Position numbers and translations under genes: made by a program | Virus record (IMG/VR): IMGVR_UViG_3300033145_003233 | Span: 483,944 to 547,943 of that record | Length of the DNA stretch: 64,000 nt | Strand: one strand, 5' to 3' | Part shown: one piece after another, positions 23,120 through 38,818 of the stretch | Layout: every line of letters begins with the position of its first letter | How positions within the stretch are numbered: the first letter of the stretch is position 1 | Notes under the pieces: model-generated | What the model saw: the letters and a program-made list of their open reading frames with translations, nothing else | Database searches by the model: none | Told to the model about the DNA's origin: nothing

Positions 23120-23163
23120 TAAAAAATAAAAAAGAAGCCATACCCTTATAGATATAGCTTCTT
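23120..23163 (-). terminator. Terminator after actin-like gene
   Basis: 13-bp stem AAGAAGCTATATC/GGGTATGGCTTCTT with G-U pairs, then a U-run on the minus strand. Confidence 0.7.
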
Positions 23164-23193: not shown

Positions 23194-24219
23194 TTATAAT
23201 TTCTTCTGAGAAATAATTGCCTGTGTAAGACAGCCCTTCACAACTGCATTCCTAGGATCTTTAGAACAAATTACATTTTTGATTTTAAATGGCAATTCCA
23301 AATCTTCTACAACAGACTCCACCTTACTACTAAATCCACTAGGGATTGCGGTTCCTCCCGCTATTACGATATCTAAAGGAGCCTCAAATTCACTCTTAAC
23401 TTTAGAAAATTTCTTAGCAAAATTCTTAAACACATATTCGATCATATTCGTATAATATGCATCTAAAGCAAAAATAACATCATCATCATAATCTATACTA
23501 TTAAAGTCTAACTTCGTTTCTTTAATATTCGTAACTTGTGATAAAGGCTTATCTGTATGCTCTGATACCTTTTGATCAACCCAATCTCCGCTCCTAGCAG
23601 CACTCATACCAACTACTGACAATCCCCTATATGCTAATACACAATTTACTTTTCCAGCACCAAAAGACATACCAATACCACTAAACGGAACTTTCTTTCC
23701 TCCCGCTTCTATAATAACTGGTTTTTCAGATAAAATTACAGCATGACCTTCTTCAATAACCTTAACGTTCCATCCCAATCTTTTAAACATGCCTTCAAGC
23801 CTGGCCTTATGAAACGTATTGTCAACAGCATTATCTACTGGGTCAGAAGAAACACACGTACAAACTAAAGACTTGTCATCAGGAGCCTTACCTATAGAAG
23901 ATTCTATCATTTTAGCCATAACAAGCATCTTCTTATCTTCTCCTTTATTTAAAACCCCTCCCTGCATAGGTCTTCTTAACTCAACTCTTCCAGGGAACAT
24001 CCTTGCCACTCTCATACTATCTTCCCCGATTACATAATAATGTTTACCATCGCTAACATACTGCCAGTCATTTTGCTCTAAAACCTGCTCTATGTCTTCA
24101 TCTGCCTCTAGCTCTACAAAAGCATTTCTTATTTCCTTAAGGTTTAAAGTCCCATCTGTAGCATTTTCTGCCACCTGAAAAAACATAGTGCCGCAATCGA
24201 CTCCATATACTTTACTCAT
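23194..24219 (-). CDS. Actin-like ATPase (ParM/MamK/FtsA superfamily)
   Basis: Phosphate-1 GVDCGTM, connect EEGHAV, phosphate-2 GMSFGAGKVN, adenosine IVIAGGTAIPSGF, connect-2 DPRNAVVKG. Confidence 0.85.
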   Translation of the reverse strand: MSKVYGVDCGTMFFQVAENATDGTLNLKEIRNAFVELEADEDIEQVLEQNDWQYVSDGKHYYVIGEDSMRVARMFPGRVELRRPMQGGVLNKGEDKKMLVMAKMIESSIGKAPDDKSLVCTCVSSDPVDNAVDNTFHKARLEGMFKRLGWNVKVIEEGHAVILSEKPVIIEAGGKKVPFSGIGMSFGAGKVNCVLAYRGLSVVGMSAARSGDWVDQKVSEHTDKPLSQVTNIKETKLDFNSIDYDDDVIFALDAYYTNMIEYVFKNFAKKFSKVKSEFEAPLDIVIAGGTAIPSGFSSKVESVVEDLELPFKIKNVICSKDPRNAVVKGCLTQAIISQKKL

Positions 24220-24481
24220 TATGCTCTCTCCTCTTTTTCTCTAAATTTAATTTTCTTTTTCTTCTAACCTCTTTCGTAAAATCACTTTCTCCGACCCTAA
24301 TCTCAACTTCATGCCCCGCGCCCTTTAGAAAAAGAACCTCATAAAGAGTACGAACCACACTATCGCTTTTATCTAAATACATATTAATACACTTTTTCAT
24401 GCCCTCAATAGACATAAATTCAGGAGAAATTCCATTAATTATTATAGGCTTTCCCACTATGTCATCTTCCATATCTTTCAC
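24212..24481 (-). CDS. Hypothetical protein
   Basis: 89 aa; overlaps both neighbours, consistent with translational coupling. Confidence 0.6.
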   Translation of the reverse strand: MKDMEDDIVGKPIIINGISPEFMSIEGMKKCINMYLDKSDSVVRTLYEVLFLKGAGHEVEIRVGESDFTKEVRRKRKLNLEKKRREHNE

Positions 24482-24696
24482 TCCAAATCTAAAATTTCAA
24501 ATCTATTCTTTATTGGATTATCTTCTATCTCAGCATCATCTAAATTCTCTTTTTCTATTTCTTTTATCCAATCAGAATATCCTCCTCTAACCGGCTCCAC
24601 CATTGCTTCTGCCAAAGCCGACCGGCCCTCTGGGGTGCTCAGCGCCTCAGATAGTATCATTTCCTTATCAGCGTCCGATAGGGGAGTAATTGGCAT
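24478..24696 (-). CDS. Small protein with capsid-N-arm-like N-terminus and C-terminal NRFEILDLE tag
   Basis: 72 aa; PLSDADKEMILSEALSTPEGRSALAEAMVEPVR, then an acidic linker and the tag. Confidence 0.7.
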   Translation of the reverse strand: MPITPLSDADKEMILSEALSTPEGRSALAEAMVEPVRGGYSDWIKEIEKENLDDAEIEDNPIKNRFEILDLE

Positions 24697-24697
24697 T

Positions 24698-25042
24698 TTA
24701 TACCCCTAATTCTTTCATACCTGTAATTATCGACTCTAAATCTAAAATTTCAAACCTATTATCAACTGGGTCATACTCACTATTAACTACACACTTCTTT
24801 GCTTTCTCTGATAGATTTTCTTTTTCTTTATCTTGTTTTTTCATCATATCTTTAGTATAAAGATAATAATACGGAATTTTATTCTGATATAAAAATTGCC
24901 TAACTAAACCCAAGTCTATTCTCTCTTTGTCAAAACTATAATATGGAAAAACTTTTTGAAAATCCAACTTATTCACCAGCTTTCTTATCATTCTTCTACC
25001 AGGAGGACAATTCAAACTATATTTATACCTTTTTATTTTCAT
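24698..25042 (-). CDS. Hypothetical protein with near-C-terminal NRFEILDLE motif
   Basis: 114 aa; YDPVDNRFEILDLE followed by 11 more residues. Confidence 0.65.
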   Translation of the reverse strand: MKIKRYKYSLNCPPGRRMIRKLVNKLDFQKVFPYYSFDKERIDLGLVRQFLYQNKIPYYYLYTKDMMKKQDKEKENLSEKAKKCVVNSEYDPVDNRFEILDLESIITGMKELGV

Positions 25043-25614
25043 CCCAGTAAATCCTCTAACTCATCTGCATTACTTAATATCGTATTTTTTTGCTTTTCTT
25101 CTTTATAATGAACAGATTTCACCTCTGTCCCTTCTACTATTTCATCGACCGCCCTAGCATTAATCTCTGCAAGCATTTCTTCGTCCATTTCTACCTCCTC
25201 ATCTTGTCTTTCAGATTGCCCACCTTCCTTTATTATTATAGTTTCTTTATTAGCAGGCATAGCCTCCAATAAAGTTTGAGTCATTTGTGTTAAATCTTGA
25301 CTAGACATCCCACCTTTAGGTTGCTTATCCAATATCTCCTTCATAGTGTCTTTCATCTCTCCTATAATATCTTGCTTCATTTTATCTAAATCGGAAGATT
25401 TAGGATCTTTTTCTGTTCTAACCGGAACATTCAACGCATCTTTAACTCTTATTTCTATATCACCTTTTTTCTTCGCCATTAATAGATGTTTAGAAGCTTC
25501 GGATTTAGCTCTCGGCATTATCCTATCTAAATCAATAGCCTGCCTAGGCCCTAATGACAGAGCTATATCTCCAAGAGTTATATGTTGTTTTGTTTTATTA
25601 ACAATAAAAAACAT
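25039..25614 (-). CDS. Hypothetical protein
   Basis: 191-aa ORF in operon. Confidence 0.65.
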   Translation of the reverse strand: MFFIVNKTKQHITLGDIALSLGPRQAIDLDRIMPRAKSEASKHLLMAKKKGDIEIRVKDALNVPVRTEKDPKSSDLDKMKQDIIGEMKDTMKEILDKQPKGGMSSQDLTQMTQTLLEAMPANKETIIIKEGGQSERQDEEVEMDEEMLAEINARAVDEIVEGTEVKSVHYKEEKQKNTILSNADELEDLLG

Positions 25615-25616
25615 AA

Positions 25617-25787
25617 TTACATTCTTCTAGTTTTAGGATATGGGCTAGCGTCTGCTGTTAATTCTATTTTACTCTCTTTTTTACATTCAGGGCACATATA
25701 ATATATTTTACCATCTCTAAAATTTATTTCTATATTAGGGTCCTTATCATGATTCCTACAATGAGAACAAACCACAGTTATATTCAT
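25617..25787 (-). CDS. Small zinc-ribbon protein, 56 aa, below ORF-track cutoff
   Basis: Manual translation MNITVVCSHCRNHDKDPNIEINFRDGKIYYMCPECKKESKIELTADASPYPKTRRM; two CxxC; fills the gap between neighbours. Confidence 0.7.
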   Translation of the reverse strand: MNITVVCSHCRNHDKDPNIEINFRDGKIYYMCPECKKESKIELTADASPYPKTRRM

Positions 25788-26350
25788 ATATCAATCATTT
25801 CACTATTAAGCATATCAATCATTTCATCATCTTCTTTATGTTTGATTTTTCTTTCAACAGTAACTATCGTATCGTTATGAATTCCTCCATGTGGAACTAA
25901 TAAGATTTCTACTATCTCAAAACCCCTTGTTTTACCTACCCCATTAGAATTCCACCCACAACTAATAACGATGCCATTATCTTTAATCACTCTTGATATT
26001 CCATCTCTAGCTTCACTCCAAAACGTAGTCCTAGTATTATCTGCGGTCGATTCTAATCCGATACCATCATAGACTCTTTTAACCTGAGTAGGGGAATAGG
26101 GGGGATCATAAATAATACCATCAGCATACTTATCATCAAACATCTTTAAAAACTTTCTGGCATCGATGTGATAATTTGTGTCCATTTTGGGATTTAAATC
26201 GTTGGTTATAGTAGCTGGGCTATAACGACCTGCAAAGGGATCTAACCATATTTTATTTCTATCCACGTACCTTGCAAGCAACTCTTTAATCGGTTTTATC
26301 TTAAAAGTCCATTTATTAGGCATGTTCCATATTCTTTTTATTTCCATCAT
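25784..26350 (-). CDS. DNA N6-adenine methyltransferase
   Basis: SAM-binding LDPFAG and catalytic DPPY motifs. Confidence 0.85.
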   Translation of the reverse strand: MMEIKRIWNMPNKWTFKIKPIKELLARYVDRNKIWLDPFAGRYSPATITNDLNPKMDTNYHIDARKFLKMFDDKYADGIIYDPPYSPTQVKRVYDGIGLESTADNTRTTFWSEARDGISRVIKDNGIVISCGWNSNGVGKTRGFEIVEILLVPHGGIHNDTIVTVERKIKHKEDDEMIDMLNSEMIDI

Positions 26351-34480: not shown

Positions 34481-34768
34481 CTATAAATCCAATATTTCGT
34501 ACCTGCTTACTACCTTAGATGATTTTTTGTGAGAACCTCTTTTATTAAGAGATGGACAGACAGAAGATATAGTCGGGATAGACTCCTTATTGCGTCTCCT
34601 AGCAAGAATCTTTTTTATCCTGTCAGGATCTGCAATGGCCTTATAGGTTTTAGTAGGTCTACCCCGATATATCGCTGGCTCAAATAATCTATCATCCCAA
34701 ATATAAAATTTAGAATGAGGAGTTACTCTTTCTCCCTGCTCGCTTATTATTTCCGCCGAAACTCTCAT
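34481..34768 (-). CDS. Small basic protein ending SRYEILDL
   Basis: 95-aa ORF. Confidence 0.65.
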   Translation of the reverse strand: MRVSAEIISEQGERVTPHSKFYIWDDRLFEPAIYRGRPTKTYKAIADPDRIKKILARRRNKESIPTISSVCPSLNKRGSHKKSSKVVSRYEILDL

Positions 34769-35249: not shown

Positions 35250-36182
35250 TTACCCTAAAATATTACAAATTTTGTCAATTTGTATCTTATGGGTCTTTAT
35301 TAATTTCTTTGCTTCTAACTTGAGATTATCAATATTCCCTTTTGTAACATTATCCATATCATCTGAAGCCACAACAAGACTTGTTTGTAATCTTATAAAA
35401 GAATCTCCAAGAATTTGTTTCATCTGATAATCTACAACATCACTAGCCCCATCAAACATGCAACTCAACAAAGGAACCGTCCATCCAACAAGACCCCAAT
35501 CCTTAGCCTCTGAATAAGAAATAGATCTTGTTAATTCTCCAGTCCCTAAAGACACAACAAAAATTTCTTTTTCATCAGGAAATAATCTTTTACATTCAGC
35601 ATACGCAGATACAGCTGGATTATTTACAAATACCCCACCATCAATCAAAACCCTTGTACCGCTACCCACTTGGATAGATGCTGGTTCAAAATACGTTGGA
35701 GCAGCCGAAGTAGCTCTTGCTACAAGTCTCATTTCTGTAGTATTCCACTCATCTCTCCAACTCTTAAAGAAATAAGGCTCTCTATTCTGTATATCATAAC
35801 TAGTTATCAACACATTTTTCAACGAAGCTCCCAAAGGCTCATTTTTAAAATATTCTTTAAGAACTTTTTCTAAACCTTTCTCAGAATATTTCTCATTACC
35901 CAAACCTCCTATTGAAGAGAACCCCTTCCAAAGAGAACGTGGGAAAATCTCTTTTCCTTTTTTCTCATACAGTTCAGCAAAATCCTGAGCAGTATATTTA
36001 GAGCCTCCATTGCCATCGTTGTGGGACATACCCAACGCTATTATCCCACCAGTTGAAGTCCCAGCTAAAAAATCAAATAATTTAGCGACACTCTTCCCTG
36101 TTCTTTTTTCAATCTCAGCCAATATTAATGCTGGGATGATTCCTCTAATCCCACCACCATCTATAGATAAAACACATTTCAT
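35250..36182 (-). CDS. Patatin-like phospholipase
   Basis: DGGGIRG oxyanion loop, GTSTG nucleophile elbow, DGG catalytic Asp. Confidence 0.92.
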   Translation of the reverse strand: MKCVLSIDGGGIRGIIPALILAEIEKRTGKSVAKLFDFLAGTSTGGIIALGMSHNDGNGGSKYTAQDFAELYEKKGKEIFPRSLWKGFSSIGGLGNEKYSEKGLEKVLKEYFKNEPLGASLKNVLITSYDIQNREPYFFKSWRDEWNTTEMRLVARATSAAPTYFEPASIQVGSGTRVLIDGGVFVNNPAVSAYAECKRLFPDEKEIFVVSLGTGELTRSISYSEAKDWGLVGWTVPLLSCMFDGASDVVDYQMKQILGDSFIRLQTSLVVASDDMDNVTKGNIDNLKLEAKKLIKTHKIQIDKICNILG

Positions 36183-36260
36183 TATTACTCCCCCTAAATA
36201 TCCAAAATATCAAATCTATCTATGTTATCTATTACCGTCTCCTTAAAATCTTTCCTCTAA

Positions 36261-37042: not shown

Positions 37043-37243
37043 CTATAAATCTAAAATCTCGAATCTATTTTCTATGGGTTCTGGATTAAGTACATTAGCA
37101 ATACGTTCCCAGCCTATAGACCGATGACAATCAGCACAAAGCAAACGGCTACGAGTTTTGCCAGATGAAGAGACAATAATACGATCAACAAAAAGTGTGC
37201 AATCAACTCCGTCTTTGCCGCAAGCTAAACAGAAACTTCCCAT
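37043..37243 (-). CDS. Small zinc-finger protein ending NRFEILDL
   Basis: CxxC...CxxC; 66 aa. Confidence 0.7.
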   Translation of the reverse strand: MGSFCLACGKDGVDCTLFVDRIIVSSSGKTRSRLLCADCHRSIGWERIANVLNPEPIENRFEILDL

Positions 37244-37249
37244 TTCTTC

Positions 37250-37456
37250 CTACAAATCTAAAATATCAAAACGGCTCTCTATTATTTCTTTTTTAACTAT
37301 TTTTCTCTTCTCTTTCGCAACATGCCATGCTCCACAAGCACAAGGACCATCTATAGTATCGCATCTAACCCCACCATTACTTCCTAAATCGACATATTGG
37401 GAATGAGCATCTACTAATCCAAAATCCAAAGCTCCATCAACATAACAACATGCCAT
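37250..37456 (-). CDS. Small Cys-rich protein ending SRFDILDL
   Basis: CDTIDGPCACGAWH; 68 aa. Confidence 0.65.
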   Translation of the reverse strand: MACCYVDGALDFGLVDAHSQYVDLGSNGGVRCDTIDGPCACGAWHVAKEKRKIVKKEIIESRFDILDL

Positions 37457-38291: not shown

Positions 38292-38627
38292 CTACAAATC
38301 TAAAATATCATATCTGCTATATATCTTTTCCACCTCTGCCCTCAAAATATCGACTTCTTCCCTTAAGCCTTTTATCTCCTCCATAAATGCGACTCTCTCT
38401 AACTCTACATTTTTATTTAATACATAAATTTTCCCTGTTGTATTAAAAACATTGCTTTCTGCCCCCTTCTTTTTACCCCATTGACGATTGCCTAAGAATT
38501 TTACCTTAATACTCTTTTGCCTAACTTTAATTATTTCTGCTTCTTCATGAACCATCCCGCCAGGACCACTACGAAAATAAAACACATGCTGCCCTACACG
38601 CAACTCTATTTGCACCATATCTCTCAT
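38292..38627 (-). CDS. Small beta-domain plus coiled-coil protein ending SRYDILDL
   Basis: 111 aa. Confidence 0.65.
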   Translation of the reverse strand: MRDMVQIELRVGQHVFYFRSGPGGMVHEEAEIIKVRQKSIKVKFLGNRQWGKKKGAESNVFNTTGKIYVLNKNVELERVAFMEEIKGLREEVDILRAEVEKIYSRYDILDL

Positions 38628-38818
38628 TATAAATCTAAAATCTCAAATCTACTATTGATAGGATCATAATACTCTACATCATATCTATCATGACAATAAC
38701 TTTCATCACACTTTCTACAAAATGGCATAACGTCCCCCTTATCTACCATGTTAAAGGACTTAAACGAATCCCATGGAAATTCTCTACCACAATGATAACA
38801 TATATATATCTTATTCAC
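38627..38818 (-). CDS. Small zinc-finger protein ending SRFEILDL
   Basis: CYHC...CRKC; GTG start after AGGAG. Confidence 0.7.
   Translation of the reverse strand: MNKIYICYHCGREFPWDSFKSFNMVDKGDVMPFCRKCDESYCHDRYDVEYYDPINSRFEILDL

Follow-up and report, generated by a model that had tools for sequence, protein, structure and literature searches.

What could a protein do that begins as a copy of part of its own phage's major capsid protein and ends in a peptide carried by dozens of other proteins of the same genome? This question is raised by a gene for 72 amino acids (aa) on the minus strand of IMG/VR record IMGVR_UViG_3300033145_003233. It lies in the stretch analyzed here (the window), which is the final 64 kilobases (kb) of a single 547,943-base-pair viral contig (33.6% G+C, 100% complete according to CheckV). 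The protein is composed of three parts: a copy of the N-terminal arm (N-arm) of the capsid protein, a linker, and a short C-terminal tag. In our reading, to which we give a probability of about 0.45, it would be a two-ended tether or decoy made of two short binding modules.

A capsid arm copy and a shared tag in one small protein

When the first 45 aa were compared with all 7,532 open reading frames (ORFs) of the genome, the sole match other than the protein itself was a 290-aa ORF. This ORF is the major capsid gene, as judged by family matches to phrog_2522 (expectation value, E, 1e-64), to NCBIfam NF042927 (E 8e-54) and to gp27 of phage G (PDB 6wkk, E 3e-97), and many relatives in IMG/VR have capsid proteins that are 70-96% identical. 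Residues 6-37 of the small protein and residues 8-39 of the capsid protein share 62.5% identity over 32 aa (blastp E 3.7e-10; phmmer E 2.4e-9), and the same N-terminal segment matches the capsid proteins of five related phage records. In addition, a tblastn search against GenBank phages independently matched phage G gp27 at its N-terminus (51% identity, E 2e-3). Compared with 42 capsid proteins of the clade, 17 to 23 of the 32 residues are identical (53-72%), and of the 13 arm positions at which those 42 proteins never vary, 10 are kept. The initial annotation had supposed a resemblance to the N-terminal helix of capsid proteins of some large uncultured phages; the alignments bear this out, with the phage's own capsid protein as well as with those of its relatives and of phage G.

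A Gly-Gly marks the end of the homology, midway through the second helix of the capsid protein. AlphaFold predicted helices at residues 8-19 and 22-32 of the small protein (predicted local distance difference test, pLDDT, 77-87), the remainder being of low confidence, and these helices are in register with those modeled at residues 10-22 and 24-47 of the capsid protein. In the ESM Atlas, the structural cluster closest to the small protein was a Gp27 family, a weak match (template modeling score, TM, 0.48). The sequence signature of the N-arm and the helix-turn-helix of the NF042927, phrog_2522 and gp27 families are present in the 72-aa protein. The full HK97 fold (about 280 aa, with a P domain and its spine helix, an A domain and an E-loop) is not, and none of the Pfam, PHROGs and NCBIfam models, capsid models included, matched the protein.

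At the codon level, the 96 nucleotides (nt) of the arm copy are 59% identical to the capsid gene. Of the 32 codons, 10 agree at the third position and 30 at the second, and for 15 of the 20 identical residues the two genes use different codons; the replacements are chemically conservative. Among four orthologs, synonymous sites of the arm are near saturation and the ratio of the proportions of nonsynonymous and synonymous differences (pN/pS) is about 0.3-0.5, while the linker has a pN that roughly matches or exceeds pS (ratio about 1 or more), and the few codons of the tag are again constrained. Because the codons have diverged so far and the residues have been retained, the capsid-like part is best described as an ancient copy whose peptide has been kept by selection.

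The tag conforms to the consensus [DE]-P-I-x-[SND]-R-[FYWL]-[ED]-I-L-D-[LI]. In a broader test, P-I-x-[SND]-R-[FYWL]-[ED]-[ILM]-[LM]-D-[LI] was required at no more than 12 residues from the C-terminus, and residues 61-71 of the 72-aa protein, followed by one extra Glu, fit this pattern. The genome holds 47 tagged ORFs by a strict pattern and 53 by a broader one; among the latter, the tag stands at the exact C-terminus in 44, and 51 are on the minus strand, the largest tandem array being located at 136-153 kb of the genome. Synonymous codons are used interchangeably for the Arg, Phe, Glu, Ile and Leu of the tag, and the stop codons differ, which places the constraint on the protein and not on the DNA; a role of the tag as a DNA element (promoter or recombination site) was rejected on the same grounds. 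The proteins that carry the tag are orphans of diverse kinds: paired CxxC motifs are frequent among them, two contain membrane segments and one an HExxH motif, and the ten largest have no Pfam family. The 72-aa protein is the only one of the 53 that resembles a core structural protein, and a capsid piece is found in only one or two of them. The second is a lead rather than a finding: the N-terminus of a 104-aa tagged protein (genome 143728-144042, minus strand; L166:8728-9042) resembles a much more diverged capsid arm that runs further into helix 2, with a hidden Markov model match of only E 8.

Long contigs of two close relatives contain 29 and 26 tagged ORFs. The complete genome G001, whose capsid protein is 90% identical, has no tag, only four looser proto-tags of the form F-D-[IV]-[IL]-D-x-[DE], one of which sits on the homolog of a 263-aa HExxH protein. 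DNA-pattern scans of IMG/VR confined the tag to this phage lineage; a scan with a D-variant of the tag gave extra single matches, which were discarded as spurious short frames. Neither tag string was found in the searchable literature. Other terminal motifs are also repeated among the ORFs of this genome (G000) and of G001: N-terminal M-N-W-Y-K (9-10 times) and Y-L-V-Q-T-P-D-Y-I (8-9 times), and C-terminal F-I-N-E (7 times). N-terminal G-F-V-S-N-S-S-S occurs 6 times in this genome and 13-15 times in G001.

The combination of arm and tag is conserved beyond this genome. A 74-aa ortholog is found in synteny in G006 and two adjacent paralogs of 75 and 97 aa in G007, while contigs from JGI and ENA carry orthologs of 69 and 75 aa at the same site, directly after the gene of a protein of about 190 aa. 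In the four genomes compared, every significant small N-arm-like protein bears the tag. In G001, G002, G003 and G005 the N-arm segment matched the capsid protein alone and no small N-arm protein, and relatives without the tag (capsid proteins 76-90% identical) have no gene that joins N-arm and tag. A word-based protein search with the 72-aa protein returned only the query itself, and a back-translated scan of IMG/VR revealed no relative. An exhaustive profile search with the four small proteins against 1.84 billion representatives (E 0.001 or better) gave 136 hits, mostly short proteins. Among them are 20 clusters with an N-terminal arm copy and a C-terminal tag, 16 of these being further clusters, in two size classes of about 56-75 aa and about 118-125 aa. 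The smallest members, of 56 aa, consist of the arm, a linker of about 10 residues and the tag, and nothing else. Judging by these sequences, arm, variable linker and tag make up the design of a family and not a one-off. The anatomy that had been read from this DNA, an arm followed by an acidic linker and the tag, is thus correct, and the case for it is stronger than first claimed because the design is conserved.

The capsid N-arm also occurs in other combinations. In the metagenomic proteins P0090, P0093, P0135 and P0074 it is joined to a twin-arginine signal (TIGR01409, above the cut-off), P0010, P0017 and P0027 contain two to three tandem N-arm repeats, and in a further metagenomic set the arm ends in C-G-G-L-E-Y at the C-terminus. 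Among these arm proteins there may be capsid genes on short contigs that were called in truncated or frameshifted form.

What the two ends may bind

The N-arm of an HK97-fold capsid protein lies along the inside of the shell, where it is the handle for contacts with neighboring subunits and with the C-terminus of the scaffold. Since the arm is such a handle, a free arm that has been maintained most simply binds the partners of the arm; in the same way, a terminal motif common to some 50 proteins most simply binds one receptor. What each end of the 72-aa protein binds, and which partner is recruited to which, we infer from the origins of the two ends. Residues 6-37 would dock where the real capsid N-arm docks, on a neighboring capsid subunit or on the scaffold, or the free arm copy would take the partner of the real arm. 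Residues 61-71 would act as a short linear motif that presumably binds one receptor common to about 50 small proteins. As a result, the capsid protein or scaffold would be coupled to the tag receptor, or the arm mimic would be held at the place of the receptor. With both ends under constraint and the linker between them free to vary, a tether is suggested, or a decoy with its location or lifetime under the control of the tag.

Satellites that exploit a helper phage are known to encode small proteins modeled on one face of a capsid-assembly interface. The capsid N-arm of phage 80alpha is bound by the C-terminal helix-and-hook of the scaffold and by CpmB, the SaPI1 mimic of that element (PMC5644958). 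The initial annotation had proposed that the 72-aa protein is an adaptor or decoy that ties the tag to head assembly. The two-module build behind this proposal is conserved in the orthologs and in the 16 further clusters; a functional link to head assembly may reasonably be inferred. That the gene belongs to a compact, co-directional unit next to genes of the neck and tail speaks for the tether or decoy. We know of no description of a phage-encoded free copy of the phage's own capsid N-arm, nor of such a copy fused to a tag of dozens of other proteins.

Several observations weigh against a tether or decoy of this kind. The real arm (capsid residues 18-70) is invariant across the 42 capsid proteins of the clade, whereas the mimic keeps only the 53-72% identity given above, so that it can serve at most a subset of the contacts of the arm. 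Most tagged proteins resemble accessory or early small proteins (zinc ribbons, two membrane proteins), with no link to the head. Furthermore, the search for a tag receptor by presence and absence, by family searches and by co-adaptation of the capsid identified none. A complex prediction with two copies of the capsid protein and the 72-aa protein (interaction prediction score from aligned errors, ipSAE, 0.00) weighs neither way.

An alternative with the same anatomy is a dominant-negative decoy with a controlled fate. Here the free arm would cap the arm-acceptor site on the capsid protein or scaffold and so delay or limit head assembly, in the phage itself or in a co-infecting relative, and the tag would have no other role than to see the decoy removed, sequestered or timed, for instance by a sink or by a protease that recognizes the tag. 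The near identity of the capsid N-arm across the clade would allow a broad action, and the minimal members of 56 aa have no room for a further function. However, a ClpP, PDZ or similar protease that could read the tag was not found in the genome with the models tried, and the decoy would be aimed at the phage's own essential protein from within an apparent late structural operon, which would call for tight control. We consider this explanation unlikely.

The tag could also be a capsid-loading peptide that binds the inner face of the capsid protein or the scaffold core, much as do the helix-and-hook of the 80alpha scaffold, encapsulin cargo peptides or the T4 capsid-targeting sequence. The 72-aa protein would in that case be a cargo, or else an extension: held at the shell by its tag, it would present an additional N-arm for the next tagged protein. 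Diverse small proteins with a flexible linker and a short, terminal, amphipathic peptide are typical of compartment-targeting peptides, and the binding of a C-terminal peptide to an N-arm helix is documented in 80alpha and SaPI1 (PMC5644958). Against this, two tagged proteins contain transmembrane segments, which suggests that the tag is not purely a signal for capsid cargo. Known scaffolds carry a basic hook, which the hydrophobic-acidic tag does not resemble, and the arm is acidic too. Furthermore, in and around the capsid N-arm no substitutions distinguish the tag-bearing from the tagless phages. Loading of the capsid is quite improbable.

Less probable again, the N-arm hairpin would have no partner related to the capsid and would have been co-opted as a stable, compact handle, which would make the protein a regulator or competitor of the tag receptor. 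The loss of 3 of the 13 capsid-invariant positions and the variation of the family in the second half of helix 2 would fit such a role, but capsid-like residues have been kept over deep divergence in at least 20 clusters, and the independent arm fusions (twin-arginine signals, tandem repeats) suggest that the arm is a functional unit. Finally, it is hardly credible that the gene is a non-functional remnant of a partial capsid gene duplication, by chance in frame with the tag, or an assembly chimera: although it occupies an insertion-prone slot and is absent from the tagless G001, the ORF and its architecture are kept in independent JGI, ENA and IMG/VR assemblies, and its synonymous sites are saturated with the peptide retained.

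If both ends of the tether or decoy bind as their origins suggest, the family would offer a direct experimental handle on the nucleation or intracellular positioning of very large heads in uncultured megaphages, and on the role of large sets of tiny orphan proteins. The arm differs little within the clade, to which the cultivable phage G belongs, so that the idea could be tested in the laboratory.

The locus and a candidate receptor

The positions of the main features are given in Table 1. Translation table 11 yields dense, long ORFs across the contig; an alternative genetic code was rejected, as relaxing any stop codon gave no specific gain over this already dense coding.

Table 1. Features of the 72-aa gene and its surroundings (window positions unless marked as genome)
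Feature	Position	Strand	Basis or remark
72-aa ORF (capsid N-arm copy, linker, tag), stop codon included	24478..24696	-	ATG start; orthologs
Residues 6-37, copy of capsid residues 8-39 (helix-turn-helix N-arm)	24586..24681	-	sequence and structure comparison
Residues 38-60, net acidic, poorly conserved linker	24517..24585	-	low pLDDT; orthologs not alignable here
Residues 61-71, C-terminal tag P-I-K-N-R-F-E-I-L-D-L	24484..24516	-	followed by one extra Glu and the stop
GGGG run, Shine-Dalgarno-like	24703..24706	-	7-10 nt 5' of the ATG of the 72-aa gene, in the 3' end region of the upstream gene; read from sequence
Upstream neighbor, 114 aa	24698..25042	-	same tag internally, then 12 more residues
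Conserved 191-aa protein, function not assigned	25039..25614	-	kept in relatives
Downstream neighbor, 89 aa, no tag	24212..24481	-	start overlaps the stop of the 72-aa gene
Volactin-family actin homolog, 341 aa	23194..24219	-	PF25216 E 4e-59; last gene of transcription unit
Terminator-like hairpin, 14 pairs then T-run	23132..23163	-	31 nt past the actin-homolog gene
Tags in the window	24484-24516; about 24734-24754; 34481-34768; 36193-36255; 37043-37243; 37250-37456; 38292-38627; 38627-38818
Major capsid protein, 290-aa ORF	genome 10648-11520, outside the window	-	phage G gp27 family

On the minus strand the genes for 191, 114, 72 and 89 aa and for the volactin-family actin homolog follow one another head to tail, and the stop of the 114-aa gene precedes the ATG of the 72-aa gene by 1 nt. 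Past the hairpin, family-library matches point to genes for a head-tail adaptor-like protein, a tail assembly-like protein and a tail tube. A promoter scan gave no matches above chance level. In G000, G006 and the JGI contig, the 72-aa gene or its ortholog lies one small ORF before the actin homolog. In the tagless G001 the gene of about 190 aa abuts the actin-homolog gene directly, so that the genes for 114, 72 and 89 aa are an insertion between them; the 114-aa gene was not found at the syntenic site of relatives, and the slot of the 89-aa gene is occupied by unrelated small ORFs in these phages.

Two other genes of the window deserve mention. A DNA methyltransferase gene (25784..26350, minus strand; phrog_11619, E 7e-49) is inserted between two conserved genes relative to G001, and a 310-aa ORF among the tagged small genes (35250..36182, minus strand) encodes a putative patatin-like phospholipase, with the motifs G-G-G-x-R-G and G-T-S-T-G-G. 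Upstream of the major capsid gene there are a 187-aa gene and a gene for an 1868-aa protein with an N-terminal head-maturation protease domain. Directly downstream of it, at L001:9782-10549 (genome coordinates, outside the window), there is a LAGLIDADG homing endonuclease with a MerR-like helix-turn-helix.

With respect to the receptor of the tag, 135 ORFs are common to the tag-bearing relatives and missing from G001, too many to discriminate among them. The receptor may instead be a core gene, since G001 also has its four looser proto-tags. ClpP, the beta-clamp C domain and PDZ_2 were not found in the genome with the models tried, and the T4 gp45 model gave no match anywhere, controls included, and was hence uninformative. 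Gene neighborhood makes the volactin-family actin homolog a candidate receptor. This protein is 61-85% identical in related megaphages, tag-bearing and tagless alike; it had no tblastn match in phage G, and a literature search for phage volactins turned up no paper.

Taken further, the tag could define a peptide-based sorting network of about 50 clients in phage G-like megaphages, into which the arm-and-tag protein would plug the head-assembly line, for example in the manner of ParR, as an adaptor by which capsid protein, scaffold or nascent procapsids would be held on filaments of the volactin-family actin from the same transcription unit; the membrane-anchored and zinc-ribbon tagged proteins would then be further anchors and cargoes. 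Such a network is a doubtful possibility, suggested by gene neighborhood and by analogy of architecture. The gene is co-directional with that of the actin-family protein and one small ORF apart from it, while the Pfam and NCBIfam scans detected no N-terminal ribbon-helix-helix DNA-binding domain in the protein.

Comparison with known systems

The tag recalls other terminal peptides that act through a common hub. The T4 and RB69 sliding clamp is a ring-shaped hub for the hydrophobic-acidic C-terminal tails of several clients (polymerase, gp33, gp55). The tag has a similar alternation of aromatic or aliphatic and acidic residues at the extreme C-terminus. Unlike the tails of the clamp clients, it is on no polymerase-sized protein, and no clamp gene was found in the genome with the models tried. 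Cargo-loading peptides of encapsulins, the capsid-targeting sequence of T4 and the encapsulation peptides of microcompartments are terminal targeting peptides, and with these the tag shares the placement of one short peptide behind a linker on many unrelated small proteins. Its sequence motif is another one, however, and some of its carriers are membrane proteins.

In ParR of the ParM and Alp7A systems, an N-terminal cargo-binding part and a flexible linker precede a C-terminal peptide that inserts into the actin-like protein. The 72-aa protein is likewise small, encoded beside an actin-family ATPase, and composed of an N-terminal module, a linker and a C-terminal peptide. In contrast to ParR, no ribbon-helix-helix was detected in it, the candidate cargo module is a piece of capsid protein, and the actin homolog is also present in tagless relatives.

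The closest counterpart of residues 6-37 is the N-arm of the phage G gp27-family capsid proteins (PDB 6wkk; NF042927; phrog_2522), which is homologous and has the same predicted helix-turn-helix. Unlike these capsid proteins, the 72-aa protein is the arm alone, with neither P and A domains nor an E-loop. In comparison with SaPI1 CpmB, the copied side here is the capsid arm and not the scaffold tail, and the gene is the phage's own and not a satellite's; the tag, in turn, differs from the helix-and-hook of 80alpha and CpmB in that it is short and hydrophobic-acidic, has no basic hook and occurs on about 50 proteins. With CpmB and the 80alpha scaffold the 72-aa protein nevertheless shares two features: one face of the interface between capsid and scaffold is reproduced in a small protein, and a short C-terminal peptide, the docking element in those proteins, is common to different proteins (PMC5644958).
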